A stretch of DNA of 64,000 nt from assembly GCA_024704765.1 (NCBI GenBank), contig JAKMXF010000350.1:62001-126000 (forward strand), read 5' to 3'. The position numbers were made by a program, and so were the translations under genes. Below are positions 7,630 through 39,147 of the stretch, piece after piece (the first letter of the stretch is position 1; every line of letters begins with the position of its first letter). The notes under the pieces were generated by a model. That model worked only from the letters and a program-made list of their open reading frames with translations, did not search any database and had not been told where the DNA came from. The DNA is from Oopsacas minuta (taxonomy: Eukaryota; Animalia; Porifera).

Positions 7630-10197
7630 CTATGCGTCTTCAGGGGCGTGCAGTGCTGGAGCACCGCCGACTAGGCCTTGAGCTGTGTTGAAGAGATTTA
7701 TAGGGTTAGTACCGTCTGTAATGAGGGTGGATTTCAGGCCGAGGGACTGTAGCAACTTAACCTGCATCTCTGGTCCCGATACAGCAATCGCACGGATAGT
7801 ATCAGATCCTATTGCTCCTACCATATTCTTGAACTTGTCTGTCTCAATCGCTGCCATATCTCTAGCCTTGGTAATCTCTAGTTCGTTCTGCTCCTTCACC
7901 CACTTGGCGTCAGCTTCTCGTTCCTGTGTGAGTCTGTTTAGTTCGGACTCATGCTCGATGTTAGAAGCCTGAGCCTTGAGTCTAGCCTGTTCTACTGAAG
8001 CTTCTCCCTCTATCCTAGCAGATTCTGCTCGAGACTGAGCCTCAGCCTTAGCTTGTCCTGTAGACTCTACAGCAGCACTCTGAGCTTGTAGCTCCAACAG
8101 TTCCCTTCTTGACTTCTCAGCCTCAGACTCATCAGTGATCTTCTGACGCTCCAGTCTACCTCTGGCCTCCTGCTCTACACGCTCTGCTTCATGCTTAGCT
8201 GCTGCTTCCTGAGAGTTAGTAGTGATCTCTATAGCCAGCTGTACTGACTTCTGTAGCGAATCCTTTGTACGCTGATCTACTGGCTCTACTGACTGGATAT
8301 CAATAGAGGTGATTACGAGCTGATTCTGAGGGAAGTTGAACTTCTCACGCACTTTCATGTTAGCATCTAGACCGAATACAGATGACCTAATAATCTTAGC
8401 AGAGTTCTTATGGAAATCATCGAACTGTACCCCCGCTACATTTCCTCGGATACGAGAGGCTATAGCTTTACAAGCATCCCCTACGAAATCTGGCACTGAG
8501 AATAAATTAGCAGCTTCTACAGGGTCCGCCTTGTCCTCTACTTCAAATCTCCAATTATATGCTAGTTGTAGTTGTAGACGAGCGTGATCAGCTGTTTCGA
8601 TTACAATGACGTCAGTACAGAAATCGGGTCCCAGCAATAGACACAGAGATTTGATTACATTAGGCTTCTTAGGCTTTCCTCCTGACAGGGATAGCTGAGT
8701 AAACTGTTCGTCTGGTCCCAGCATCACCAGATCAGGACCGAATATGACACGGGCTCGCTTCTCCTTATAGTCATAGATCTGTACACATGCGTTATGAGGT
8801 ACACGATAGGCTACCACTTTAGTCTTGTCACGCTTAGTGGTGGGTGCAGTGGGCTTGTCACCACGGTTAGCTAAAGGGTCTCTATGCTCAGAGAGTAGAC
8901 CCTCAACACCTGGGGGCAGTTCCTTCGACCACATCTCCTCGTCTTGATCCATCATGTAGGTCTGACCACAGACAGCTCGTACTTTACCAGTCTTAATGTT
9001 CCGCACATATATTCCCTCATTCTCATCTAGAGGGATAGCCTTACGTCTGGATACAACCTCAACCTCTACACAGGGTACGTACTCAGCTGGACCACGGATC
9101 ATCCATCTGTCTCCTGGTCTCCTCAATACCTCTGCTTCAGCATCTTGGAATATTTCTAGTGCTCTAAGGATCAACCCCTCATCTTCGCCCAGGATATACA
9201 TGTTCTGTATTCCTTTCTCTAGTCTCTCACCTGGCTCCAGGAAGAAGGACTTCTCTCCCTTTACTAGTTTGCGCTGTCCCAGTTGAGGCTTCCCATTCTC
9301 CCCTACAGGATCTAGAATCACACAGTACTGCCTACTAGTTAGTGTAGTGATGTCTACTACACCCACAACCTCCTCATACACCCCTGGGATGTGTGCTTCT
9401 GTATCCTCCATACGGATAAGCCATTCCTCTCCGTTCTTACGTGTCACACCCTTATCGTCCTCAAATGTGCGGGTAGATCGCATATGTAGAGCTACTTTCT
9501 CAGTCAGGACGTATGCATCTACGATTTCAACTACTTCCTCATTAGCTACAGGCAGATAAGCTCCTATCTTCTTCACCAACCATTCTTCCCCTGTAACGCG
9601 GAAATGACCCCCTCTGTCGTCAGTCTCCCTGCGAGCTCTCAGCTTCAGAGCTTGATTGGGTTTGATAACTGTCGCACGGATGGTTTCCTCGATCTCAACC
9701 TCCTTCTTGGGTATGTAAGTACCAGGACCCTCAAACAACCACTCATCTCCAGCAACTCTCTTCTTGCTCTGTTCCTCATCCACGAAATCTAGTGTAGCAC
9801 GTAGACGTAGCGCAGTGTTAGCCTGTACTACTCTCAGTGTAGTAACGCCCCCTTTCAAACCTTCTCCCGGGTATAGAGGGAAAGGATCCTGAGCCAATCG
9901 TACCTCTAAGTCAGCATGATACAATTTTATCTCTCCGCTCTTGTCTGTCATTACGTTACCCTTATCGTCACGCATCACGGGGTTCTCTACGATACAGTAG
10001 TGTCTGGGAGGTACCATTATCATCTTCTCAGGGCCTAATATGACCTTCTCATTGTCCTGTCGAACGTATGTGAGCGGACCGGTTACAACTCGTGTTACGT
10101 TAGTGTTGTAGTCCAGAACATGGAGGTAGTAGTTGGGAGGAATACGGAAGATACTCTCTCCGTCTCCATCAGCACGACGAGGGGGAGCTCGGGACAT
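7630..10197 (-). CDS. MVP: major vault protein (single exon, 855 aa)
   Basis: MVP repeats ([34 protein letters not shown]), shoulder domain ([33 protein letters not shown]), cap helix ([17 protein letters not shown]), LITDG near the C-terminus. Confidence 0.97.
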
Positions 10198-22662: not shown

Positions 22663-23194
22663 GTATACAACAAATCTTTACGATTCAAGAACCTTTCTAC
22701 GAAACTATTAGTCAACCACCTAACGAAGAACCCGATAATACTCCAGATGTCACAATCAATACCACAATTACAACTGATTTAGAATATATTAGTTCAGAAA
22801 ATTCAAATGATCATCTCTAAACCAACATGATTACATAGCCTGTCAGCAATCAACTTTTTCAGAAACCACCATTGCTCAAATCCACTTTATATAGTAACTC
22901 CCATAAATAATATTAGTAAGCCCATATACGCTTTATCATCCTTTGTTACTCAGAAATCTAGAATGTTCCTTCAAACCTTAGAATAGCAGCAATCAGTTAT
23001 ATTTAGTACTATAGTTGTGTTTGTACTGATGAGCTGGATAAATAGCCAGCGAAACAAATTATGTTATTGTCTACTACTATTAAATCTACATATACTCTTA
23101 GTTAATAATAATAATAATAATAATAATGCGAAATAATAAAAACAAAAATATATAAAAAATGTTAACAATCAATTATCAAATTAATTCTCCTTCC

Positions 23195-23796
23195 TTATGA
23201 GGGTAAGCTAGTACCTGGCCTGTAATTAATGAGGTAGCCTGGATAAGCTAATCCATTTTCGTATAGAATATATACCTTAGTACCAGCTGGGTGTATGCCA
23301 GTTACAGAGTGGTAGCCTTGTCGAGGTCCAAGTAACTCAGAATTAGCCTCCTCATACCTTGCGTTTCCCACAAACACTTTAGAGAGAAACATAGAACAAA
23401 TACCCGTGCTGTCCTTATAAGCGAGACCATGTGAGTATGAAGCATTTTGTGCGAAATATATCCCTCTACCCCACATACCCTCCTTAGCATACTTAACATT
23501 AAACCCTACAGGATCTTGTATGATGACCTCAGGATCTGTGCTAGAGGATCCATGGAAAAGTGGTTTGATTAAAAGTGTGTTTTCTCTAAAATTCGAACTT
23601 CCATCATCACCATCTTGAGGCTCAATTTTTCTCTTAATATTCTTAACAAAATTGTCCCAGCATGTCTTGTGGTGTATCTTGAGTACAGTCATTATCGTAG
23701 CATTAGGTAGAGTATTCATAAAGTTTCTAGCTACAGCAGAATATTCATCACTATCTGGTAGTAATTCTTCTTTAGTCAGGGTCGGGTATAGATCAA
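23195..23796 (-). CDS. PARP-family (ARTD) catalytic-domain exon, predicted last exon of the sacsin-like gene
   Basis: LFHGS, WGRGIYFAQNASYS, MFLSKVFVG, KVYILYENGLAYPGYLINY, giving an H-Y-V triad. No ATG before residue 32 of the ORF-track entry. Acceptor ccccaatctag at 23797, phase 1. Confidence 0.85.
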
Positions 23797-24390
23797 CTAG
23801 ATTGGGGTAGAGCAATTAATATTGTTACTAATCATAAATGTAAAAAGTACACACGATTAGAGCCTGCTAGCCTGAGGTCGAATTATTATCTAAATTGACG
23901 GCAGTCAGCAGTATTTTTGACTTTAGGTAATCTATAGCTAATTAGCTATACCTATTATTAAATATCAAATGTTATTCGTCTGAGTGTTTGTCCGTTGTCA
24001 AGGAAAGGATTTATGGTATGCTATTTGAATTCGTATTTTGCAAAACCCAGATGTAGTAAAACTATGACTTTATCGTGTTCACCAAATGATTCAACACACT
24101 TTACCCCAGTGTAGCTTTTTGAGAGCATGTACGTCTCTCATGTATTCTGAGATGGATCGAATTTGTTTACTTAATAATCATAAACGAAACAATAAAAATA
24201 GTATGCCATAAATCCTTTCCTTGATAACGGACAAACAAGCAGAAAGACAGACAACAATTGAGAATTAATAATATAGATAATGAACGTGTAAATATGTATT
24301 AACCAACTGTGGCCCCAAAGGAGCCGATTTTATCGCGAAGCGACTGGCCCAAGCCCCATAGTTTAATAATAAACAATAAATGTTCCTTAC

Positions 24391-27300
24391 AATTCTCTAT
24401 CTGTGTCATCATGAGAGATTGAGCTGTAGGCTGTATCCATATCTTATCGTCTTCGCTGAACATTAATTCTTTGAAAGTAGGAAATTCAGATTTCACAATT
24501 CCTAATATGTCAGACGTATTCTTAATAGCTTCTCTCGCAGTGGTAACTGAAATATGCTCCATTGGTATACAACAACCAATCCCTGGTGTCATTAACGGAT
24601 TTTTAGCATTTTCATCAAAGTTTATCAGAGACACACAGAGAGAACTGAAGTTGTTATAAGCTATCGTAGATTTGAAAAATATCTTGACAATATCCAATAA
24701 GATGTCTAGGTTCCTCTGACAAGATATATTAGCCTTGTTGTATTTGTTAATATAGAGAATAGCAATACAAGTCTTCATTGCACACTCAAAACAGTTGGCA
24801 CAAGCGTGTGGTGGGAATATTGCACCATCAGCCTCCTCACAAACTAACTTCTTAGCTGCTCTCAAATCGCATTGAGCCGTGCGGATCCATAGTTTTGCAA
24901 TGAATTTATCTTCATTTGAGATTACAGCAGAGATTGTATTAGAGATAAGTCTTATAGGAGGAGTGTGAATTATTTGTAATAATGTTGCTCTTGTTACACC
25001 AGCTGGACGAGTAGCTGTCGGGTAATGAGATGTAGAAGTACTGCTTGGAGTGAGTCGTGATGAGCTAATGGGTGTGGTACGCATTACCAAAGATGTGGAA
25101 CTTTTCACCGATGGTAGGTTAATATCATCGATAAATGGACAGGCTTGTATGTTAAAGGAGTCTAATTTCTTCATAATATCACAAGTATTATCACAAGATA
25201 AACATAGTTGAAGAGCAAATAACATATCACTGAATATATTCCCAAAATGTAGATTTAGTGCATAGGTCAGGTCATGGAAGAAATTCACGTTTTTAATATT
25301 TCCACCATTTGCATATAAAACTGAGTTTTCAATAAAACAATCGTAAATTCCATCTTTGGTAATTACAGCACCACCTGCAACCTCAGTGATTTGCATTGAG
25401 AGCGTAGATACTATTGTGATTGATAATTTTTGTAAAATTTGAAAACAAGTCAAATACAGAGGATCATTTGCAATCCCTGGTTCCTTAGAGATATCCTTTA
25501 CATTACCATTCTTTATACGAATTAGACTTAGATCGCCTTTTCCATCAGCTATGTTGGAATGATAATAAATACGAATTAGTCCTTTAGCAAATTCTCTACA
25601 CTTAAGCAAGTATTCCATCTCAAGACACTCATTTCTATACCGTGATATCGTGCCAGCATTCTTTAAAGCAGGATCTAAAGTCGCACTGATAATCTCACTC
25701 AAGTGTTTAATTTTGAGAGAAACAGGTGGTTTACATGACCCCAGAGAGTTCGGAGGTAATTCAAGCAAAAACTGAAGGTTGGAAAGACTCGGGAAACTTT
25801 CTATATGTATCTTAAGTCTTGTATTATCAATATATACTACGTTAGGTATAGGGACAATTTCATAAATATCAGATAATACCATTGTGTTCAGAGGATCTAT
25901 ATTAATAGTACAGTTAGACTGTTCTGCTTTCCTTAGGGTACTGATAAACAGTTGAAATGTTGTTTTACTAATCTCCTTCCTCTGTTCATTTCTCAGAGGC
26001 CTATCATGGTAGATATCATTCATAACAGCTGCGTAATGAAAATAATCAGCTGATTCACTCACTCCTACAAGTTTCAGAAATGCATGATAACTCTTGAGAG
26101 CATCTGGAACTTTGAATAAATACTCGAGTATTATCGTGTTTAATGAAAATACCATGTTCCTGGGATAGAACAGTTTGTTTTCATAATAAATGCATTTAAT
26201 ATTGGTAAACTTGTTTTTCAAATTTTGACTACAATTTTCTTGTAAGAATCCATAAGTTTCAATGAATAAATTGTCCATAATTGAGTGATGATGAACGTGA
26301 ATTTCGTTAAAATTATCACAAATCAACTCAAGATGGCTTATAACAGTTTGTATGTCAGGTTTGGAACGGATATTCAGATATAATTCTGTATTATATTTTT
26401 TAGTGTATGTGTAACAATCGGAAACTAATGGATTATGGATATGTGTAGCCATGCAGCAAGAGTATTTGAATTCACACAACTCAGCCTTACTAAAGCTCGA
26501 TATTATTTGAGTATTTGCACTAGAGTTTGGGATACATTTCCAAACAGGTAGGAATTCAATTTTAGATAATTGTTGTAGTAGAGATGTATTATGAATATTC
26601 AAATTAATACCCTTAGATATCAACTGAGCTAGTGCAGATAGAGGTACAAGATAATCACTTGATGTGTAGATAAATTTTCTACTTTCTATCTTCTGGGCAG
26701 CTGTGAGTATTGATTCTAGATCTGCTTTATCATGCAAGCCAAGATTACATAAAATCTGAGAACAATTTCTATAACCATAAGTGTTAGACCATTCATTGGG
26801 TAAGAGGTCTTCTGAAAAGAATATTTTGAACAATCCTACTTCTGGTGAATAGCAGTCACTGACTAATCTATTTCTATGAATAAACCTTACAGATTTGAGT
26901 TTATGAATAAAATCCATTTCATAAGATGTAGGAGTATTTTGAATAAATAGAAGTAATTCTCTTTGCCCATTAATGTCAAGTTGTGTAAAATATCGCAAGA
27001 CATAGACTAGGAAGAAATCACTCTCAGTCACCATGTGTATTCTAAGAGTTTTTGCGATGTGTTTAATAAGTGCTTCTTGTTTTTTAGAAGCCTTAAATAT
27101 TGTAACTCTTTCGTTAGTTAGTTTGTTGATCAGTAAGGCTCCAATGTTATATGTAGAATTGTGAATGTAAAAGTTATCAAATTGAGCTATACAACACAAT
27201 ACATCTTGGTGGGATAAAAATATCTTCAGTAGAGAGATTATCCTTATCTCCTCACTCGTTAACTCATTTAACTTAGTATTAGGCAATAGATTCCTCAGTG

Positions 27301-30300
27301 AAGTAGCCTCGCTCTTATCAAATCTCACACATTCTATATTAATGTCAGATAGTTTTACTGCTGATATGAATAGAGGGAAAGTTATAGTACTGGAGATGAC
27401 TAGAGGCTGTAAATACATTGCTAGCGTACTCACATCGAAATCATCTTTAGCTAGTTTGTCTAGACATAATACATAACAATTCAGTTTAATCAAGGAGCTG
27501 TATAGCTCTTTATTGGAAGATGCGTTACTTGAGGTATTGAGTATAGCAGGTAGATTTGATATCAACGTATACTCTCCAGCAGGGTTATTCTTAATAGGAA
27601 CTAAAGGAAATTTCCCAAATTTCTGTATTAAATCATAGGATTGGAGTCCTGATTGAAGTATGAATTTCCAAAACAAACAACATTCCTGTAGCTGGAATTC
27701 CTTAACTTCTAAATTATTCGATAAATAATCAGGTGAAAGTTCTTGCATAAAACCATGCGCACATAGTATTTGTATGCTATTGATAGGAAATATAGATGAA
27801 ACAAACATTCCAGCACGATGAGGAAGTAGACTCCCGTATGCAGGCGTGAATGTAGGTTTAGTTTTAGTAAAATGTCCCAATCCTCCATTAAAATCAATCT
27901 TTAATGGAATTTTCTGAAATAATAGAATACATTCAGGTTTGGCTGAGAACAGATATTCTAATAAAATATCTATTTCCTTCATACTTAATATGAGAGCATT
28001 AAAAGCAGTATATTCAATTCGGTTGAGGAATGATAGTAAAATAGTTTGATCCAATCTAGTTAGGTAACATGAAAATTTCTTAAAACTGTGATAAATGTGA
28101 TCTGGGGCACCAGTTAAAGGTAATCTCAATTTCTTGAGAGTTAAATATAGTGAGTCTTGCTCTAAAGAGTGTTTCCGACTCTTACTAGCAGACAAAAGAT
28201 TATGTGATGATGAGATACCAGATAATCTTCTAGAGCTATCTGGGAATATTCCTCCATGCTCTCCATGTAGAGGATGCAAACGCTCATAGCATCCGCTGCT
28301 GATGAGTATTTTCTCATTACTACTATACATTAGAATGTATAACTCCTTACATAGTGCGTATAGGAAGTTGGTATACACTTGATTACCTTCAATAAGTTTA
28401 CCCATGTCTGGGTATAGAGAGTAGTACCAGTCGTAGTAATCAGAATCTATAAAATTTGTTAACTCAGTATCCGCTCTACTCTTTAGATAGATAAGTAAAG
28501 AAGCAAATAGCGGTGCTATCACGTGCTGGATAATAGATGAATGCCAAACATCTTCCCACTCCAATTTTTCAGGAGAATCTCCACTCACATCTCTGAAGCG
28601 AATGTGCTGTCTCTCAGGCTCAAGGATAAAAGGAGCATTAATCAGAATTGGAAAGTTCACAGATCTATCATCCCCTATCGGGAGATAAGAATACAAACAG
28701 CTTCCTCCTGTTGGTGTCCTGCAGCTTGCATCAGTTGGAACATGTACCGCTATTCCACCATACACTTGATGAGTTAATTTTTCTCTCTCATAAATACTTT
28801 TGTATTTAGTAATTTGAGGAGAACATTTTTCTAGATCCTTCATAGACCCTTCATGCGTGAATAGGATCCATGAAGATGTATGTGGATAGCTTCTATTTCT
28901 TTTTCCAAGAATACTAACATTTGGTTGATTTGGTGAGATTGTTGTAAATTTTTCATGTATTATTTCTCTTTTTGTAATCTGTATAGTATTCAAGAATTTA
29001 CAATTGAGTGAAATTGGAGGTGGATATGGATTCAGGGGGGTAACCAGTAATTTAAATGTACCCATCATAGTTGTGCTATCTTTATCACGTTTGTAGATTG
29101 ATATTCTCTGAATATTATTTAAAAAGAGATTGAAATTTGACGAGTTTTTAAGAAAATCAGATAATATTTTCTCGACTTCAGTTTCAATACTAGATTCCAT
29201 AATAGGAATTCTAAAGATAGTATAATCTCCATTGGTTAAGGTAGGGAATGTATTAGCGGATGTAGTGTTGAGAGATTCTAGAGAGTATGGAATAAACTGG
29301 TCAGGGAATTGATCTATGTTTTCTGACTTAAAAGTAAATTTCATTCCAGGTAAGTTCTGAGGAGGGAGTATTAGGAATTTACGAAAAGGATCAAAAATAC
29401 AAAAATAAATTTCTCCACCGTTATTCCTTCGTGTTAGTAAACAAGGAGAATCAGTTAAATTATAAACAGCATTAAATCCTAGCCCAAATTTCCCAATCGT
29501 ATGGCTGTCCTTTTTACCACCAAGACCAACTGACTGTATTCCTTGTAAATCTTTATCACTGAACGTACTATTGTTATACACAAGTAATGATGTATACTGC
29601 TGGTATTTGTGCCAGTTTGGCTGTTCATTCTCGCTCAAACATAGGGTGTTAGTCCTAGAAGAATATTCTGTAGTATCTAGTATAAAAGCTACTTCTGTTG
29701 CTCCAGCATCTTCTGCATTCTGTAACAGCTCTTTGAGTATTGTAGTACCACATGGAAATGCTCGCTTAAGGCCTCTAATTCTATCAGCGATATCTTCATA
29801 CTGTCCAAACTCTTCAAACGCAGAACTTGTGTAATATTCACTTCGCTTACTCCTTGCACCGAGATTAAAGGCTGCTATCGGGTGAATGCGTTTATGAACT
29901 GTATTGGATCTGTTCAGAGAGGGAGGGTATCCTGTCTCCTCCCAAGGCATATCATTGATCACTAATTCACAGCCAGGGCACAGTTGTAATTCTGTTGAGA
30001 GGAGAACTTGTTTAGGATTGTTAGAAAATAGATATTTTTGAACATTATGGAAAAATAAATTGGTGAGTACAATAATAAGATCAATAAGGAGTTCGTCATG
30101 GATATTAGAATTCTCTCTAGCAATAAGATGTAATATCCTGTGAGCATCTGTTTGTGAAATATTTTCCTTTATTTCTAATCTTTGTAAGAATGATTCCCTT
30201 AATCCCTTATTCTCATAATTCAGTTTGTAAGGAAATGTTAAAAGGAATTTACAACTGTAATGAGAGAATTTCTCAGAACTGACTATATACGATGTATGAC

Positions 30301-33300
30301 GAAATGATCCAGAAACTGGATGCCAAATGTAATTAAGAGTTTCTATAGAAACGGCAGGATCGTTTACCCAGTGTTTGAATATGGTAGTGTATATATTTTC
30401 TGCCCTTGCTGATAATTCATTTTGAAGATTAAAGGAATGAATTTGGCCTTCTTTTTCTCTCAAGCTCTGTAATAATGAGGCGAGTGTGCGAATATTAATA
30501 GATTTCCATGCTTCGCGGATAGACAGGAATGTTTCAATACATTTAAGTTTGTCCACTTCTTTTGTAACAGCGTAACAATTTGTAGACATGAGGTACCGTA
30601 GGTCATAAGAGTAACATTGACTCGGACTAGCAAACTGAGTACATCTTTGTAATCCTAGTCGTATGAGAAATAAATCATTCCAAACAGGAATTAATTTAAT
30701 GTTCACTAATTTGCTTTGTATCAATTTTAAATCCCTGTCTTCGTAGCCAGAAGGAGATGATGAAGACATATTGTTAAGATACTGAAGGATAGTCATACAA
30801 TGTTCAAATCTTCTTGGATTTAAGAAACTTATCTGACATTCACAACGTTCAATGAGATCTGATACTGGTAATGTATTCTCAATTATTTTTAATATCTTCA
30901 AAGCTTTGTAATGAATTGTTTTTGGTGCAAATAACTTGTCTAAATCTGGATGAATAGTTCTCTTATCACTAGGACAATATAGTCTAGCTACAGGTGAGCG
31001 GGGGCTAATTACCTCTGAAGGTTCGAGAAGTGAGTAATCTTCTCCGGCACCACACGGAATACATGGTACATTAGAGAATAACTCTTTGACCCAGTTTTGA
31101 GATCCTTTGTGTATAACTGGTAACAAGGATGTGAGTACTAGTTTAATATCTGGGAATGAAAATGTAGAAAAATTAGGGAAAATAACTTCACGACAAATTC
31201 TTTCCAAACTAAAAATCTTGTCTTTATTATTTTGCAAAATAATATGAAATAGATGAGTTGATTGTAAGCTAATACCTAAGTCTACTAAAGATATATTAAA
31301 TTGTAAACATTTTCTTCTAGCAAAGTTATAAAACTCTTTCAAAGAATTGAAGTCGGAATAATCCTCATAAAATATAAAGTTAGCTTCATTATAACCAATC
31401 CACTCATTTCCCAAGCCGTAATAGAATAGAGGTGTATCAGTATTCATGACTCTAATAGCAAATGCTTTAGGAAATTCTCTCCAAATGATTAAATGAGGTT
31501 GAGCGTTGAGAGGCCACAAACGATAGAACTCATATATTTGTTCTTTTCCTTTAGAAAACTCCCCTCTTATTTGAACAAACAAATTGATAAATGTATTTAC
31601 AAGGCTGTCATTGACAAGAGCTATATTCCATGTAGTCCTGTCACTACCATCCTCAGTACATGCTATTCCTCTTCTAGATTGATCTAATGCAAAACACCCG
31701 TTGATGTACATGGGATAAGGTGAAGTGACAGGTAGAGGTAGATAACAGTACATGTAGTAGTTATTTTTCTTTGGAGGAGATTTTCCTATTGAATTAAGGG
31801 GAAGTGCAACTGAAGTAACAGGCATGTAATTTGATATCTTTCTATGCGAATTTTCCTCCAGAAACTCTATACATTGCTGAATTCCAGTCGAATAGGAAAT
31901 AATGAAACTTTTTGATTCCTTTCCTGAAAGTCTTTCACATGTGATAGTAACCTTTTGATGATGCACAACAGGTGTAACATTAGGGGTAGTCAATAACTCG
32001 TCAAAATGAGCCAAGTTTTTAGAAATAAAAGTTTCATGAAGTTCAAATGGCTGTGTAATTTCCTTTTTAGACACTTTCAGAAGCAGAACTGGTTTCGAAG
32101 TTAGTGGTTTTTCGTATATTTCAATACATTTAATATGCTGAAGGAAACGAATGCTTGATTCAGCTTCCAATAATATCCGTGATTTTAGTTCCCCTATCGC
32201 AGAGCTATTATAGACAGTACCGGATATATCAGATGACACAGTACGGAATGGTAATCGAAAGAGAGTTCCATTGAATGGTTCAGGATCAAAAACATCACAG
32301 CCAAATAATTTTAGGTTAAAAACACTGAATTGATCTCGAAACTCAAACGTTTCGGTATTGTTAAGTACAAAATCGACCTGAATACCTGGAGGGTTACTTC
32401 GATGAAGAAACTTCCTATTAGGATCCAACATGTGTATATACCTCCCACTCACAAAACTAGGTAAATCTGTCAAATGGTAAACTGTGTTGAAACCTAATCC
32501 GAATTTTCCGATTTTCAATTTATCTTCAAGTTTCGTTTCACCAAAAATTTCCATTATGTTATCAAAGTCAGCATCTGTGAATTGTGCATCATCATAGAAA
32601 TACAAAGCAGGACCTTGCCATTGCTTCATTGTAGGCTCTATGAGTGAATCTGTAGGGAAACTATTATAATCAATGAGAATACGGGCTGTATTAGCTTTAG
32701 CGTCATCTGCGTTCTGTAATAATTCCTTGTAAACATCAATATTTGATTCATATTCCTTTAGAATACTACGTAACCGGGTGGTTAACTCTTCAAACTGACC
32801 TTTGAATTTAAAGAAACCCAACTGATCACCCAACATTGTTAGTTTAAATGATGTGGCTCCAAATTTTAAAGCAACAAGTCTAGATATATTGGAGTTTACG
32901 ATAAAATACATCTTATCATTTTTATTAACTTGAGATTCCTTTGAGGATTGTAAAGGATTGTCATATACCACACACTCGGTGGCTAAATGAAGCAGATTAT
33001 CAACTCCCAATAGGAAATGATCGCTAAATGATTGAGTCTGAGAATTATAGAGACTATGGATTATGTTAAGGATGAGTTTTACATTATGAGGTCTAGAATC
33101 CATAGATTGGGATTGATATAAGGTATCCAAAATCTGGTATAATTGATTATCAGAGAGAGATTCATTTGCTCCACAGTTTTCGAATAATTTCCAAGCAGCT
33201 TCAGAGTAATTCAGCTTTTCAAAGGAATAATAAAATGGCTCTAGAGAATAATCTAAGTTTCTAGCAACTAGTTTCGCTTCAATAAAACTATTTGTATGTT

Positions 33301-36300
33301 TCACATACACAAAATGTGTTACTATCTCATCTATCACTGTTAGGATAGATGGTGAAGAATAAATTCTATTTAATAAAGAGTGAATCCTTTTTGGGTCGGA
33401 TGAGTGGATTGATGTGAGTGAAATTTTATTTAATTGTTCAGCCATCATTCCACCTGTTACTTCAGTATTACAATTGAGATGATTCAGTAGTTCATTAGAT
33501 TGATTGTCTTGATAAGATGGGAAGAATTGTACACATATCCTTACACTGGCAATAAGGGAAATATCTATATCGTTACAGAACACGACTGACTGTAGTTGAG
33601 TTAACTTACGTTCTCCTAAGAAGGGTATACATTTGGGGTAATCACCAGGACGAGTATATGATGGTAACACAATACTACTACTCAACAGGATTCTAGAAAT
33701 TGGATCAGTGTTAAGGTTTGAACTTTTCCAGCAAGATGTAACAAATTGAAGAAGTGTAGAAAAACGTTTTCTCCATAATTCATTGCAATTAGGAACATTA
33801 ATATCCAAATGGAAATAACATACAGCTGATTGTGTAACTGCTTCAAACATTTTCTGATTAGTTAGTTGTGTGGAAATGAAAAAAAGTTCCAACTTCTTTG
33901 CCATGTGAAAATAATCTTTGTAGTCTTTATGAACGAAGAAATTAGATTTAGAAGGTAAGAGTATTTTTAACATATCATCATCAGGATAGAACAGCTGATT
34001 AGGCTGACGATAGTTACAAGGTTGTGATATGGAATTTGAATTGTCTACAATCCATTTAGTAGTTTTCAAAACCTGAATATTTTGATAACTTACTTTATCC
34101 AGATTGTTTAACAGCCATATACTCAAATTAAAATGTTGAACAAACATATTAGTCTCAATCATAACTTGCATGAATGGTAATATATTATTTATAAGGAAAT
34201 TGTTAAAATCTGGAGCAGTTATACCCAACTTTCCATATAACGTATTTACATTGTAGATATCTGGAGATAGAAAATTAGCTGGATACTGAAACTGTGAGGG
34301 AAGGTAAATATTACCTGGTACTCTCACAAATGTAGATACAGCGATAGAAATATGATTCCCGTTAATAGTCGGGAATATTGGGAGCTTCTTAATTAATTGT
34401 ATTTGATTATTAGTAAATCGGGAATCGTTGTTCAGAATATCGATAATGAGTTCGAAAAGTTGTTCATTCGTATCTTTTCTGAGTTTGTTAATAAACGTAT
34501 TTAAGATGTTATTGTTTGTCTGCAATAGAGTCAATAATCCATTTGGAATAGGACTAAGGACTAAACTATCTAAACATTCGACAAATTTATGTGAGTGTAT
34601 AAATACACTCCCACATTCTAGCAGTATATTCTCTAAGGGTTTGCACTTATCACCTGTAGAACATTGAATGTAATTGCTACTAGTATTAGATGAAACAATA
34701 GGCAAGAGTTGGTTATTGATTGAATACAAGTCATGCGTTGGGAGCAAGGGTAGATCACCTAGGGATCTAGCAAGGTTCTCATCAGATCCTATAAAAGACC
34801 ATACGAGTTTTATCCAGGATTTATTGAAGGGAAAAAAGTTAGGATTCCATTTTAATGGGGGGGTCGTAATCATAAAATGTGATTTTATTGATAATTCGAA
34901 TAAACGTTTCAATAAATCTAAATCTGTTTTGATGTTAGATATATCTTTGAGGTTAATCTTTCCTTTACATGTGTGAGATAACATTAAGATACGAGAATAT
35001 ATTTCAGTAGGTATACCTCGATCTACAAATGAGCCTTCTGTTCCAGGGAAAAGGTTAACAAAATCAAAAGTATCATCATAAACATAATAATAAGTTTTTG
35101 GATTAATAGAAAATTTGAAAATATGTGGAGTAGCTACTTTCAAAAGTGGGATACTATCAAGTTGATTCGAAAAATTACTATTATGAACTGTAAAGTCTGA
35201 TAAAATGAAATTTAGAATAACAAATGTATGATCTTTAAGATTTGCAATAAAAAATACATTCAATGCAGGATTATTTGAGTGTTTCACCAACAGCTGACGA
35301 AGTAGAGCGGGTGTTACTCTACGTCTATCAATATCATTCTTAACAGAATCTATTCTGTTAAATAAAGTTAGGATAGTTTTAGGAAGAAGGACTAAGGGTT
35401 CTTTTAAAAGTTTCAAGAGCTTTTCTAACGGGCAATTAATATTAGTATTAACATCAGATAGGTATATTCCTTCTTCAATTTTAATCCATTCATTCGTAAT
35501 GCAAGAATATACAATTTTCTCATTCGCTAAAATCCTTAATCCCTGGTCAATTAATATAGAGGATTGCTTCTTCAACGTACTTGCTCCCAGCATTTGATAA
35601 TGGTAGTTACCAGGGTTGCCATGATGAAAAGAGTTGAGGAGAATACTGTAGAAGATAGCGTAAGCACTCACACCAAGCTGTTCTATCAATAATTTATTCC
35701 AAGTAGAGTCTGTGTCTTGTGAGTCAACACTCGGCCATTTGATTTGACGTCTGTCATTTGACAAAGCAAAGTATCCATGTAAATTAAAAGGTAGATCTGT
35801 AGGTTCAGGAGTAGGAAGAAAACAGAATAATTTACCAGTATCAGCTGATAGTTTATGATTAAAACGAACTGTTAAGTGAAAATTAAAATTTTCAAGAATT
35901 CTATAAATAAAATCCAGAAGGTTATTTCCGTCCCAATCATCTTGGAAGTTCATAGCTTTTGATGTACCAAGTTGATCACTTGTTATACCAGTTTCCATTG
36001 CTATTCCTATCCATGGTAGATAATTAAGGTTACTCTTAGAATAAAATTCATAAAGTTCAGTTTGTGATTGAGGAAATCCGATCATATTTAAAACGAGCCA
36101 TACTTTATCCTCTCTGCTATTCAATGAAGAAATAGGAAATAAATTTATCGTCACTTTGATAGATTTGTGAAAATTCTTTTGCTCAACATGATTTGATAGT
36201 AATCTATTAGAGTACACTACGTCATCAATATAATTATTTGGTATGTTAATAGAGAATATCTTCTTCGTCTCAATTCCAGATTTTGTGTAAAGAGTAATTG

Positions 36301-36633
36301 ACTTAATATTTTTAAGAAATATTAGAATATTACTAGATTCCTCTTGCAAAGGTTTAAATAATTTAGCCATAACACTATCAGCTGTGTATAGCCCAGCTGG
36401 TTTGATTTTAGATTTTGATTGTTTGTTTCGAAGTGGAAATCTGAATATTGTCCCGTCATACTTACTAAGGCCATTATAATCGAAATAAGAACGGAAACAA
36501 TTCTGATGAGCAGAATATACTGGATCTTTAAAGAACTTTTTCAGTTTTATTCTCTTCCCCGGTTCATTAGGATATATCTGTTGCTGTGGATCCAATATTC
36601 CAATACTGTTATTACTCAAAATCATAGGGACAT
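24391..36633 (-). CDS. 12.2-kb main exon of a sacsin-like protein (GHKL repeats 2 and 3, HEPN-like domain)
   Basis: ELLQNADDA and ELLQNAEDA, GKFGLGFN twice, YLPLP/CFLPTP and NGCFAL/HGYFAL sacsin-repeat motifs. C-terminal AKLWIRTAQCDLRAA...ACANCFECAMKTCIA matches the sacsin HEPN pattern. No HPD J-domain motif seen. Acceptor at 36634, donor gtaagg at 24390. Confidence 0.9.
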
Positions 36634-36967
36634 CTATTCAGAATAGAATAAATAAATTATCATAACAATATCACTGCTTAGACCGTAAAAAAATACACTT
36701 GCCTCCTATCACAACTCGTTCCCACCCAACCAACGAAATTAATGTGCAGTGTACACGACATATCCAGATCCCTGGTATGCGATAGAATATGAAGGATAAA
36801 CTATCAACTGTATAGCTTGATACATATACAATACTTAACCATAGCTAATACATGGCTATTCCTAATATAAAAATACGATGCTGTTCCCTGTTCATGACAA
36901 ACAATGGATGAAATACAATAGTAATTTACTATGCATGGCTGAATTATATAATATACTATCATAATAC

Positions 36968-39147
36968 CTGTAATATGATAGACAGCTACAAATCCCAATC
37001 CAAATCTACCAACTTTCAAAGTTTCTTCTACTTTACCACTAATCCCAATATTCCTGATCCCCTCCCAATCACGTGTTTTGAATTTAGCATTATTCCATGA
37101 GTATAGAGCTTCTCCCTGATACAATGAACATACAGGCTTTATAAGATTAACACAGCTGTGTTTAGTGTAATCTAGAAGGAAAGCTACCGAGGTAGCTTCT
37201 GCATCATCTGCATTCTGTATTATCTCCTAGATAGATATCAATAATTGAGTATAATGACATGCTTCAAAAATCACAATAATAGAGTTTCAAGTTAAAATAA
37301 ATATACGATATAAGAACGAGAATCTGAATATCGAATTCATTGTTTGTTATCAAAGCGTTTGGATAAGGTATTACATGAGTAATAGAGGTTGTAACGTAAA
37401 AGCATCGGAAGGGTTAGGATGGTGAGATTACTACCAAATGATTCAAGGTATGAAGTGAGGTAGAATCCGTAAAGCGACTATTTGAGGGAATTTACAATGC
37501 TACATGCTCCAGCTAGAGATAAGTGGACACTTGGTCCTCGGTAAGTTCGTAGCTAACAATTCTCTATGAAAATTGTATATTGAGTACTTATACTAACTTA
37601 CTAAGTAGTAATAGTTAGAATAAAACACAAAAATCGCTATGGAGGAATTCAGGACAGCTTTCTACACGTAAATAGTACATACCTTCAGGATTTGACTCCC
37701 ATCTGGATAACTGTTAAGAATACCTTTAATATACTCTATTAGAGGAGGAGTCCTCTGGCCAAAGTCTCTCTCATCTGTGAACAGAAAATTATCAATTTAG
37801 GAAAGTACTAAAATAGAATAAGGGGAGTCGGACAATTTGGGCTAGGGCGGGATTAAGAGAAGTAGGGGCCTAAGCCCAATTATTGATTGGCCACCCATCA
37901 CAATTTGAATACACTGACATCATATCGTGATAAATTCATATGAAAAATTGATGGCTAATAATTTGTAACTGTATATAGGGCCAGCCATTACTAGCCTAGT
38001 TCACGCAGCCCAATAAGAGCCCTGCAGATGGATAAGTCCTGAAACGGTGGTTATCCAAAAGTTGAGGGCCAGTAGCTGAGCCGGGCATTTCTAGTGGGGA
38101 TAATTCATCAGGGTCCTAGGAGGCCCCCCAGTGGGGTCTAGGAGCGCAGCCTGAATAAGACAAGCTATAATTAGTACGTATAAAATTAGTTCCCTTTGTA
38201 CTGTCACATAACTTCTATACTTGTACATATGGTTACTACCCCATAACCTTCAGTCCGTAGATCAATTCAAGGTATTTACGAGGTATATACGAAGTATATA
38301 CCTGAGATTTTGGTGAAATAACATGATGTTAAGGGTAAAATGTGAGCGAAGCGGGCCCAAAAATTTATTGTTTGTAATTTGAGCTCAATAACGAAACAAT
38401 TGAATAACATGAACATTCCAGATAGTGTATAAATATCCTGAAGGGTTACATCCTCCTAGAGGATCCGCCACTGGTGGGGCACCCTAAGGGTGGGGGCCTA
38501 AGCCATGACTTAGTTGGCTTATAGGTTAATCCGGGCCTGACTACCGCGAGTTGACTCTGCCATTATATAAAATGTATAGGTGGGTGCTGGGTAGGCATGA
38601 CGTCATCTCTGTACACCCAGCTCATGAGCTTAGTTACGCCAATAGTTGGCTATCACCAGGCGTATCTATTTAAAGTTTAACCCATGATATTTGAGAGGAA
38701 ATTTAGTAGAGACTCCATGTAACAATATGGTAATAAATATTGTGCTATTTGGGTTGCTGCCATTTCAATAGCTAATGCAGAGCAGAAAATAAATGAATTG
38801 AGTAGAGAAGATTAGAAAAAACTAACTTACCCTCACTGCTAGAATCACTTGATTCATCATCTAGAAGAATATAATATGGTATATGTAATATTATTCTATC
38901 GTTAAGTCAAGTAATATTTTAGTAAAAATCGTCACCCATGACTGAGTTTTATTTAGGTTATAGGATCTTTTCTGACCAACACAGAATTTGTTACAGATAG
39001 AATAATATAATTTGTGTTGATAATGAGTAATACAAGTAATAGCCGAGCTGAATTATAAATGATATACTCACGAGATATTTGTTGGCGTTTTGGATTATCT
39101 GTTGTTATAGGTGCATCTCTTTTTCTTCGGGATATGTTCTCAGCCAT
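36968..39147 (-). CDS. 5' exons of the sacsin-like gene: 39147-39072, 38860-38831, 37774-37683, 37226-36968
   Basis: GT-AG junctions are phase-compatible and give MAENIS...[54 protein letters not shown]...GRFGLGFVAVYHITDVPMIL (first sacsin repeat). All six exons sum to 13302 nt = 4433 aa + stop. Exons 1 and 2 are less certain than exons 3 and 4. Confidence 0.75.

Follow-up and report, generated by a model that had tools for sequence, protein, structure and literature searches.

Structure of the locus

A 64,000-nucleotide stretch of the genome of the glass sponge Oopsacas minuta (GenBank contig JAKMXF010000350.1, positions 62,001 to 126,000; hereafter the window, with position 1 as its first letter) carries on its minus strand a gene for a giant sacsin-like protein that ends in a PARP-type ADP-ribosyltransferase (ART) domain. 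In the list of open frames of the window, the giant frame (24299–36625, 4108 codons) is uninterrupted, and an ART frame of 206 codons (23195–23815) lies on the same strand 483 bases downstream of it. A previous reading of this DNA, made from the sequence alone, had linked the two frames by a phase-1 donor and a phase-1 acceptor and had proposed a six-exon gene for a protein of 4433 residues with the order GHKL ×3–HEPN–ART. Read on the minus strand, the donor is GAG AAT T|GTAAGG, with its GT at 24390–24389, and the acceptor is ccaatctag|TT GAT, with its AG at 23798–23797 and the exon starting at 23796. Both sites are in phase 1, and the codon split across intron 5 (T+TT) encodes Phe. The match to the PARP catalytic family PF00644 starts at residue 22 of the ART frame and the first Met of the frame falls within this match, so that the ART exon lacks a start codon, as had been noted.

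A word search with the giant frame retrieved the GenBank protein P0001, "Sacsin-like [Oopsacas minuta]", which has 4433 residues and is 100% identical to the window exons. Mapped back on the window, P0001 falls into six exons with GT–AG at every border (Table 1) and carries the junction peptide IENFDLYPT at residue 4231. Because P0001 maps exactly on the window exons, the six-exon model deduced from the sequence is the GenBank model. The UniRef entry of P0001 is named "Poly [ADP-ribose] polymerase" and is annotated with both PF25794 and PF00644. Exon 4 is supported by positions 63–115 of the Pfam SACS profile and by a PF25794 match in the O. minuta genome (C350:98963–99235), and the Pfam scan also reports a further SACS piece in a short frame at 36804–37124. 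Exon 5 is supported by 100% identity to P0001 over residues 153–4233 and by a Pfam SACS match with an E value of 3.6e-133 in three stretches. The locus is, with very little room for doubt, one six-exon gene encoding a sacsin-like protein of 4433 residues, in which three GHKL repeats are followed by a HEPN domain with a His-to-Arg replacement and by an ART domain.

Splicing of the ART exon to the sacsin-like frame

Four public sequencing runs (X1–X4) of one sample from one study were compared with window positions 22800–25600 (2,801 letters). None of the listed runs is registered as RNA, and the kind of run X4 is not on record. In X4, one contig free of ambiguous letters joins 23796 to 24391 at a depth of 460 and skips 594 bases, which end CT..AC (GT..AG on the minus strand), and another contig starts exactly at 24391. 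An unspliced X4 contig across the donor (record 27), the only one of its kind, has a depth of 16. The joint of 24391 to 23796 is thus present at the exact borders that had been predicted.

The depth of X4 is about 440–1700 over the exons, about 550–650 over the exons flanking the joint and 0 or 16 over the unique parts of the intron. In X1 and X2, exons and unique intron parts have equal depth (about 86–104) and both borders are crossed unspliced, so that these two runs behave as genomic DNA; X3 also crosses the donor border unspliced. The genome study of O. minuta placed RNA-seq and DNA-seq libraries under one BioProject [PMC10280926]. Because of its exon/intron depth pattern and because the study deposited both library types, X4 behaves as RNA-seq. 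The joint 23796|24391 was not found in the three DNA-like runs (X1, X2 and X3), and no second full-identity copy of the ART exon was found in the O. minuta genome (61.46 Mb, 365 contigs). These two results together exclude a retrocopy as the source of the joint.

Several features of the read data reduce the weight of this evidence. The joint is seen in one contig of one sample from one study, the library type of X4 is deduced from the depth pattern and the study description, and the reads cover the joint between exons 5 and 6, the four upstream junctions lying outside the compared region. Furthermore, the shorter side of the X4 joint is 30 letters long, against a bridging rule of 31 letters. 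A side of 30 letters is expected, however, because it is the k−1 overhang of a junction unitig at k = 31 where the spliced and unspliced paths branch.

Intron 5 contains an element resembling a miniature inverted-repeat transposable element (23979–24243), with inverted arms of 53 nucleotides (23979–24031 and 24191–24243) that are 87% complementary. Its bins have a word depth of 10^4–10^5 in each of the four runs, which marks it as a high-copy repeat. Just beyond the stop codon, at 23095–23162, is an (ATT)n simple repeat at which the read contigs break. An X3 contig over the ART exon differs from the window at five positions (23331, 23755, 23760, 23761 and 23783) and stems from either a second haplotype or a nearly identical copy.

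Sacsin repeats and the HEPN domain

P0001 matches the Pfam family SACS (PF25794) in three stretches (E 9.6e-182; 602 bits against a cut-off of 32.8). The GHKL motif I (E..QNA.DA) and G.FG.GF are present in all three repeats, at residues 67/139, 1456/1528 and 2454/2533, respectively, which bears out the three GHKL repeats of the initial description. The Hsp90-type ATP-binding motif I is therefore intact in each repeat. Neither a J domain (PF00226) nor a ubiquitin-like (UBL) domain (PF00240) is found on P0001 by Pfam at E ≤ 0.01, and no J-domain match covers the sole HPD tripeptide (residue 2047); the lack of both domains had been noted before. Because both are missing, the protein belongs to a sacsin-like paralogue family and is not an orthologue-grade sacsin.

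The domain that precedes intron 5 had been described as HEPN-like. Pfam at E ≤ 10 gives no HEPN match in the last 500 residues of the giant frame or in the preceding 700, and a phmmer search of the PDB with the last 400 residues gives a chance match only. Comparison by hhalign of an alignment of ten sponge HEPN sequences (A1) with one of nine canonical sacsin HEPN tails (A2) yields a probability of 98.4 and an E value of 7.7e-15. The AlphaFold2 model of the domain has a predicted local distance difference test (pLDDT) score of 78.5, and its top PDB matches in Foldseek are 3o10 (human sacsin HEPN), 1wol and 2hsb (archaeal HEPN proteins), with a probability of 1.00 but weak E values of 0.02–0.09. 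By both profile and fold, the domain is a true sacsin-type HEPN domain.

At the motif site, canonical invertebrate sacsins have [ST]H.L..L (A2), and 10/10 sponge sequences have [EQ]RNL, in which R68, N69 and L70 are invariant (A1). The R-x4-6-H RNase motif, which the sequence-only reading had also failed to see, is absent from the HEPN domain, since the His is replaced by Arg in the ten family members. The HEPN domain of the paralogue on contig C300 (L018:8001–8525) reads ERNLRFH with R-x4-H spacing, and the other nine sequences have no His there. An RNase-like site may thus have been retained, or acquired anew, in this one paralogue.

Most solved HEPN domains are homodimers. A homodimer of this HEPN domain is predicted with a score of 0.80 (best control, 0.00), possibly out of memory of the solved dimer 3O10. 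Of 30 solved pairs 21 attain the mark, and of 23 single chains none does. The dimer runs agree in at least 53% of contacts, the pLDDT of the partner is at least 82, and the invariant residues of helix 1 are mostly within the predicted dimer interface.

The ART domain

The exon 6 frame matches PF00644 with an E value of 4.4e-17 (62.7 bits against a cut-off of 26.7), and Pfam detects the PARP domain on P0001 with an E value of 5.4e-14. Profile and structure searches, which had been proposed as a check, recover the three SACS repeats and the PARP domain on P0001 and the HEPN domain in the part before the donor. In a phmmer search of the PDB, PARP12 is closest to the ART domain (E 2.5e-12), with PARP14, ZAP (E 5.9e-9) and PARP15 being weaker. 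Foldseek with the ART model retrieves PARP12, PARP14 and PARP15 with E values of about 1e-11 and template modelling scores of 0.61–0.73. The loop region 145–174 is predicted with low confidence.

His81, Tyr113 and Tyr120 are invariant in ten ART sequences that have diverged to 39% identity (alignment A3). The position aligned with the triad Ile of PARP12 is Val174 in this protein and V or I in all ten sequences, and the H-Y-V triad postulated earlier is thereby placed on that of PARP12. On the strength of its sequence, the domain has the H-Y-hydrophobic pattern of mono-transferases and is PARP12/14/15-like. Such a domain is predicted to be a catalytically active mono-transferase, and we consider this probable.

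Conservation of the fusion among related loci

Six related giant frames in four related ENA assemblies are 28–53% identical, and a PARP frame follows downstream in 6/6 cases on the same strand at a distance of 0.4–2.9 kb; the related protein P0011 is outside the set of loci looked up. The O. minuta genome contains three more pairs of a giant frame and an ART frame, on contigs C354, C300 and C22. The C354 pair corresponds to P0012 (5363 residues, four SACS stretches plus PARP) and the C22 pair to P0106 (KAI6660974.1, 2722 residues, SACS plus C-terminal PARP). In the C300 paralogue, the corresponding intron is 430 nucleotides long. In all ten loci, conservation of the giant frame ends at a phase-1 GTAAG or GTGAG donor, which is read through as "CK", "SK" or "CE" with a stop within a few codons, and conservation of the ART frame begins right behind a pyrimidine-rich phase-1 AG. 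Because the same phase-1 donor and acceptor recur at homologous positions in nine other loci, these splice sites are more than a chance match.

The HEPN tree and the ART-exon tree, built separately, have the same topology. On unsaturated pairs, the ratio of nonsynonymous to synonymous substitution rates (dN/dS) is 0.16–0.23 for HEPN and 0.25–0.35 for ART, values at which the ART exon is judged to be under purifying selection. Among six SACS-bearing loci in O. minuta, the sponge-type HEPN domain and the ART domain occur together in 4/4 ART-bearing loci and are both absent from the other two. Because of this co-occurrence and joint absence, the HEPN–ART tail is regarded as an old unit that is inherited together. 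The two SACS genes without a sponge-type HEPN domain or a downstream ART exon lie at about 243000–258400 of C354 and about 459500–477800 of C11, and the genes next to them encode a DHX37-like helicase and Med11.

Judged by one neighbouring gene, the related ENA assemblies are close kin of O. minuta. This RRM/F-box gene has its only close named relative in O. minuta: it is 59% identical to the O. minuta orthologue over its full length, and all other named matches have at most 31% identity with partial query coverage. A tblastn search with neighbours of the related loci L001, L004 and L005 found nothing in the window. The O. minuta orthologue of the RRM/F-box gene downstream of L001 is on the same contig as the window, about 68 kb away and on the other side, and hence there is no tight synteny.

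Distribution in databases

PF00644 is present on two of the 97 long sacsin relatives returned, both from O. minuta, and on none of the other 95. With regard to the architecture search that had been suggested, the combination of giant frame, phase-1 intron and ART exon is shared by three further O. minuta genes and by six loci of four related assemblies.

A word search for long proteins with this ART domain, of low sensitivity, returned P0001 only and missed the paralogue P0012. The ART exon was also used in an exhaustive search, of whose 2651 matches the best 150 were considered; P0001 and P0012 stand behind cluster representatives without ART, and more distant fusions may therefore exist elsewhere. 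Among those of the best 150 that were scanned, the sole SACS-bearing protein is the paralogue P0106, and the other long ones, including the nearest non-sponge proteins, are macro-WWE-PARP proteins. The best match of this search, the ENA protein P0098, has 1154 residues with five tandem PARP catalytic stretches and reads as an unusual all-ART array.

The records of P0001, P0012 and P0106 come from automatic prediction, carry the name "Sacsin-like" or "Poly [ADP-ribose] polymerase" and have no HEPN domain annotated. No literature connecting sacsin to a PARP or ART domain was found, and two glass-sponge genome papers, one of them the O. minuta paper [PMC10280926], do not mention sacsin, PARP or ADP-ribosylation. 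The fusion is present in databases but rare there, no published description of it was found, and the family looks restricted to glass sponges. The unfamiliarity of the architecture therefore stands with regard to the literature and to its rarity; it does not hold for the databases themselves, since the exact model is in GenBank and UniRef and at least two O. minuta paralogues are annotated with both families.

Comparison with known systems

Like vertebrate sacsin, the sponge protein is giant and largely encoded by a single huge exon, and it has three Hsp90-like GHKL repeat regions in which motif I is intact. The two also share a homologous HEPN domain close to the C-terminus, which in human sacsin is also without the RNase motif [PMC3710099]. 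Vertebrate sacsin has the order UBL–three sacsin repeat regions–XPCB–DnaJ–HEPN, whereas the sponge protein has no UBL or J domain and its HEPN domain is not terminal, with a PARP catalytic domain behind it. Named sacsins are only 23–30% identical to the sponge protein. Furthermore, vertebrate sacsin is encoded by a single gene, whereas the sponge proteins form a multi-copy family.

Sacsin paralogues of the sponge Amphimedon are fused to DEATH domains [PMC3710099], sacsin-type fusions to TRADD-N have been reported [PMC8195603], and one oyster match (P0051) carries the CARD family PF00619. These DEATH, CARD and TRADD-N fusions of invertebrates (Amphimedon, oysters and cnidarians) resemble the O. 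minuta protein in combining a sacsin scaffold with a lineage-specific signalling or effector module and in belonging to a family expanded in an early-branching or marine invertebrate. However, their death-fold adaptors are mostly N-terminal and their HEPN domain is at the C-terminal end, whereas the O. minuta protein has an enzyme behind a HEPN domain that has lost its His. With the PARP12/PARP14/PARP15/ZAP group, the protein has in common the catalytic fold, the H-Y-hydrophobic triad and the C-terminal place of the domain in a multidomain protein. In contrast, the N-terminal partners in that group are CCCH zinc fingers, WWE or macro domains, with no GHKL ATPase or HEPN domain among them. The O. 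minuta paralogues P0012 and P0106 show the same combination of SACS and a C-terminal PARP domain.

Proposed mechanism and alternatives

In the mechanism proposed here, the GHKL repeats would form an ATP-driven scaffold that binds clients or ligands, as in sacsin. The HEPN domain would have lost RNA cutting and would pair two chains, and the C-terminal ART domain would carry out NAD+-dependent mono-ADP-ribosylation of the bound client, of a partner or of the protein itself. As a result, targets would be marked, or a signal would be given in a stress or host-parasite response. The ART effector would thereby stand where other invertebrate sacsins keep an RNase-competent HEPN domain or death-fold adaptors. 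Taken as a whole, the architecture together with this mechanism of scaffold, dimer and ART is the best explanation, and we hold it to be reasonably likely. A role in conflict or stress surveillance rather than in housekeeping proteostasis is put forward tentatively by analogy; it is suggested by the multi-copy family in a compact genome, the antiviral-type relatives of the ART domain and the death-fold fusions of invertebrate sacsins. The ATPase-gated sensor with an ADP-ribosylating effector of the initial reading, which might serve in immunity or stress, is likewise a proposal from analogy and family context.

Several observations pull the other way. The ART model has a pLDDT of 69, which is moderate confidence. 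The nearest structures include the inactive PARP-like domain of ZAP, and domains with an H-Y-hydrophobic pattern can be inactive. The score of the HEPN dimer may echo the solved dimer of the human domain (3O10). The dN/dS values are well below 1, with no sign of an arms race. Finally, vertebrate sacsin is a proteostasis and cytoskeleton factor and not an immune protein.

The alternative that survives best is a housekeeping one, which appears rather unlikely: the protein would be a glass-sponge sacsin for proteostasis, with mono-ADP-ribosylation of clients or co-chaperones in place of the J domain and UBL and with no role in immunity or conflict. Vertebrate sacsin is a co-chaperone [PMC3710099], P0001 has neither a J domain nor UBL, the exons have a substantial and uniform word depth in the RNA-like run, dN/dS lies far below 1 and the neighbouring genes are ordinary housekeeping genes, all of which fit such a function. 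However, the compact 61-Mb genome holds four ART-bearing paralogues and two other SACS genes, other invertebrates have sacsin paralogues with fused death-fold adaptors, and the ART domain is nearest to the PARP12/14/15/ZAP group. The vertebrate PARPs of this kind are known mainly from antiviral responses, which also counts against a purely housekeeping role.

It is also unlikely, and more so, that the ART domain is a pseudo-enzyme, that is, a module binding NAD+/ADP-ribose or protein like ZAP/PARP13, in a protein that is purely a sacsin-type chaperone or scaffold. The inactive ZAP domain among the nearest solved relatives, the absence of the catalytic Glu and the poorly predicted loop are consistent with such a module. 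However, the triad of ZAP is Y-Y-V, with the His missing, whereas H81, Y113 and Y120 stay invariant in the sponge family in spite of the divergence of its members. The third residue of the triad is always V or I, which is also the case in PARP10/12/14/15, mono-transferases that are active, and the purifying selection on the ART exon also argues against the loss of activity. It is very improbable that the sacsin-like gene ends at 24299, with the ART exon as part of a separate transcript or as a relic without expression, and that GenBank holds a chimeric prediction. This reading has some support: it can draw on the lack of a run recorded as RNA, on the unspliced X4 contig across the donor and on the repeat insertion in intron 5, but it is rejected on the deep junction contig at the exact predicted borders and on conservation, namely the coincidence of phase-1 sites and conservation limits in ten loci and the congruent HEPN and ART trees, in addition to the missing start codon before the ART domain and the lack of a second 100% ART copy in the genome.

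A wider form of the proposed scaffold–dimer–ART mechanism is speculative and improbable as it stands, and would make the protein a member of an old glass-sponge surveillance family with swapped effectors. The HEPN domain would have become a dimerising platform, a PARP12/14-like mono-ART would have been added, and ATP-dependent recognition by the GHKL repeats would lead to ADP-ribosylation of the bound target, for instance a viral or transposon-derived protein or nucleic acid. If so, animals would have in this family their own counterpart to the HEPN/ART effectors that prokaryotic defence systems interchange, and the ancestral job of sacsin-like proteins would be hinted to be conflict sensing and not neuronal proteostasis.

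Significance

Sacsin is the disease protein of ARSACS (Charlevoix-Saguenay spastic ataxia, an autosomal recessive disorder), and little is understood so far of its HEPN domain and giant ATPase scaffold. In the sponge, nature has hard-wired a sacsin variant to a predicted ADP-ribosylating enzyme and passes on HEPN and ART as a single module, which suggests that whatever the scaffold binds receives a chemical mark. For the field of ADP-ribosylation, the protein adds a new partner for PARP catalytic domains, a GHKL ATPase plus HEPN, in a very early-branching animal lineage. For genome annotation, "orphan" PARP frames beside giant frames in sponge assemblies can be read as terminal exons. The value of the finding may be called moderate, the protein being already in databases, the family apparently restricted to glass sponges and the function deduced by analogy.

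Feature coordinates and neighbouring genes

Exons 1 and 2 (38831–39147) together encode a basic run followed by an acidic Ser-rich run, SSDSSSEDE, a combination that resembles a nuclear-localisation signal. The coordinates of all features of the gene are collected in Table 1.

Table 1 Features of the sacsin-like ART gene, in window positions
Feature	Position	Strand	Description
Exon 1	39072..39147	-	Start codon ATG at 39147; residues 1-25 and one further base; basic stretch RRKRD...KRQQ; donor C|GTGAGT (mapping of P0001)
Exon 2	38831..38860	-	30 nucleotides; acidic Ser-rich run; acceptor ttcttctag|, donor G|GTAAGT
Exon 3	37683..37774	-	92 nucleotides; leads into SACS repeat 1; acceptor ttcacag|, donor AAG|GTATGT
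Exon 4	36968..37226	-	First half of SACS repeat 1; EIIQNADDA (GHKL motif I), GRFGLGF
Exon 5	24391..36633	-	12,243 nucleotides; rest of SACS repeat 1, repeats 2 and 3, repeat-associated regions, HEPN; ends at phase-1 donor
SACS repeat 2	32102..32791	-	GHKL ATPase-like; P0001 aa 1434-1662; ELLQNADDA; C350:94102-94791
SACS repeat 3	29066..29797	-	GHKL ATPase-like; ELLQNAEDA; C350:91066-91797
HEPN domain and conserved linker	24392..24916	-	P0001 aa 4059-4233; Arg (24713-24715, invariant RNL) at canonical His position
Intron 5	23797..24390	-	594 nucleotides, phase 1, GT..AG; contains the MITE-like inverted repeat
Exon 6	23195..23796	-	Coding 23796-23198 plus stop; PARP-type ART domain, 199 aa
ART triad codons	H 23552-23554; Y 23456-23458; V (catalytic Glu position) 23273-23275	-	

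Downstream of the gene, the window contains a DEAD-box helicase gene, a PIGO/PIGG-like gene and the genes for major vault protein and bystin; ankyrin and NHL genes lie upstream. The frame for major vault protein (7630–10197) is intronless over 855 codons and lies in the sole G+C-rich stretch of the window (0.48 vs about 0.35).

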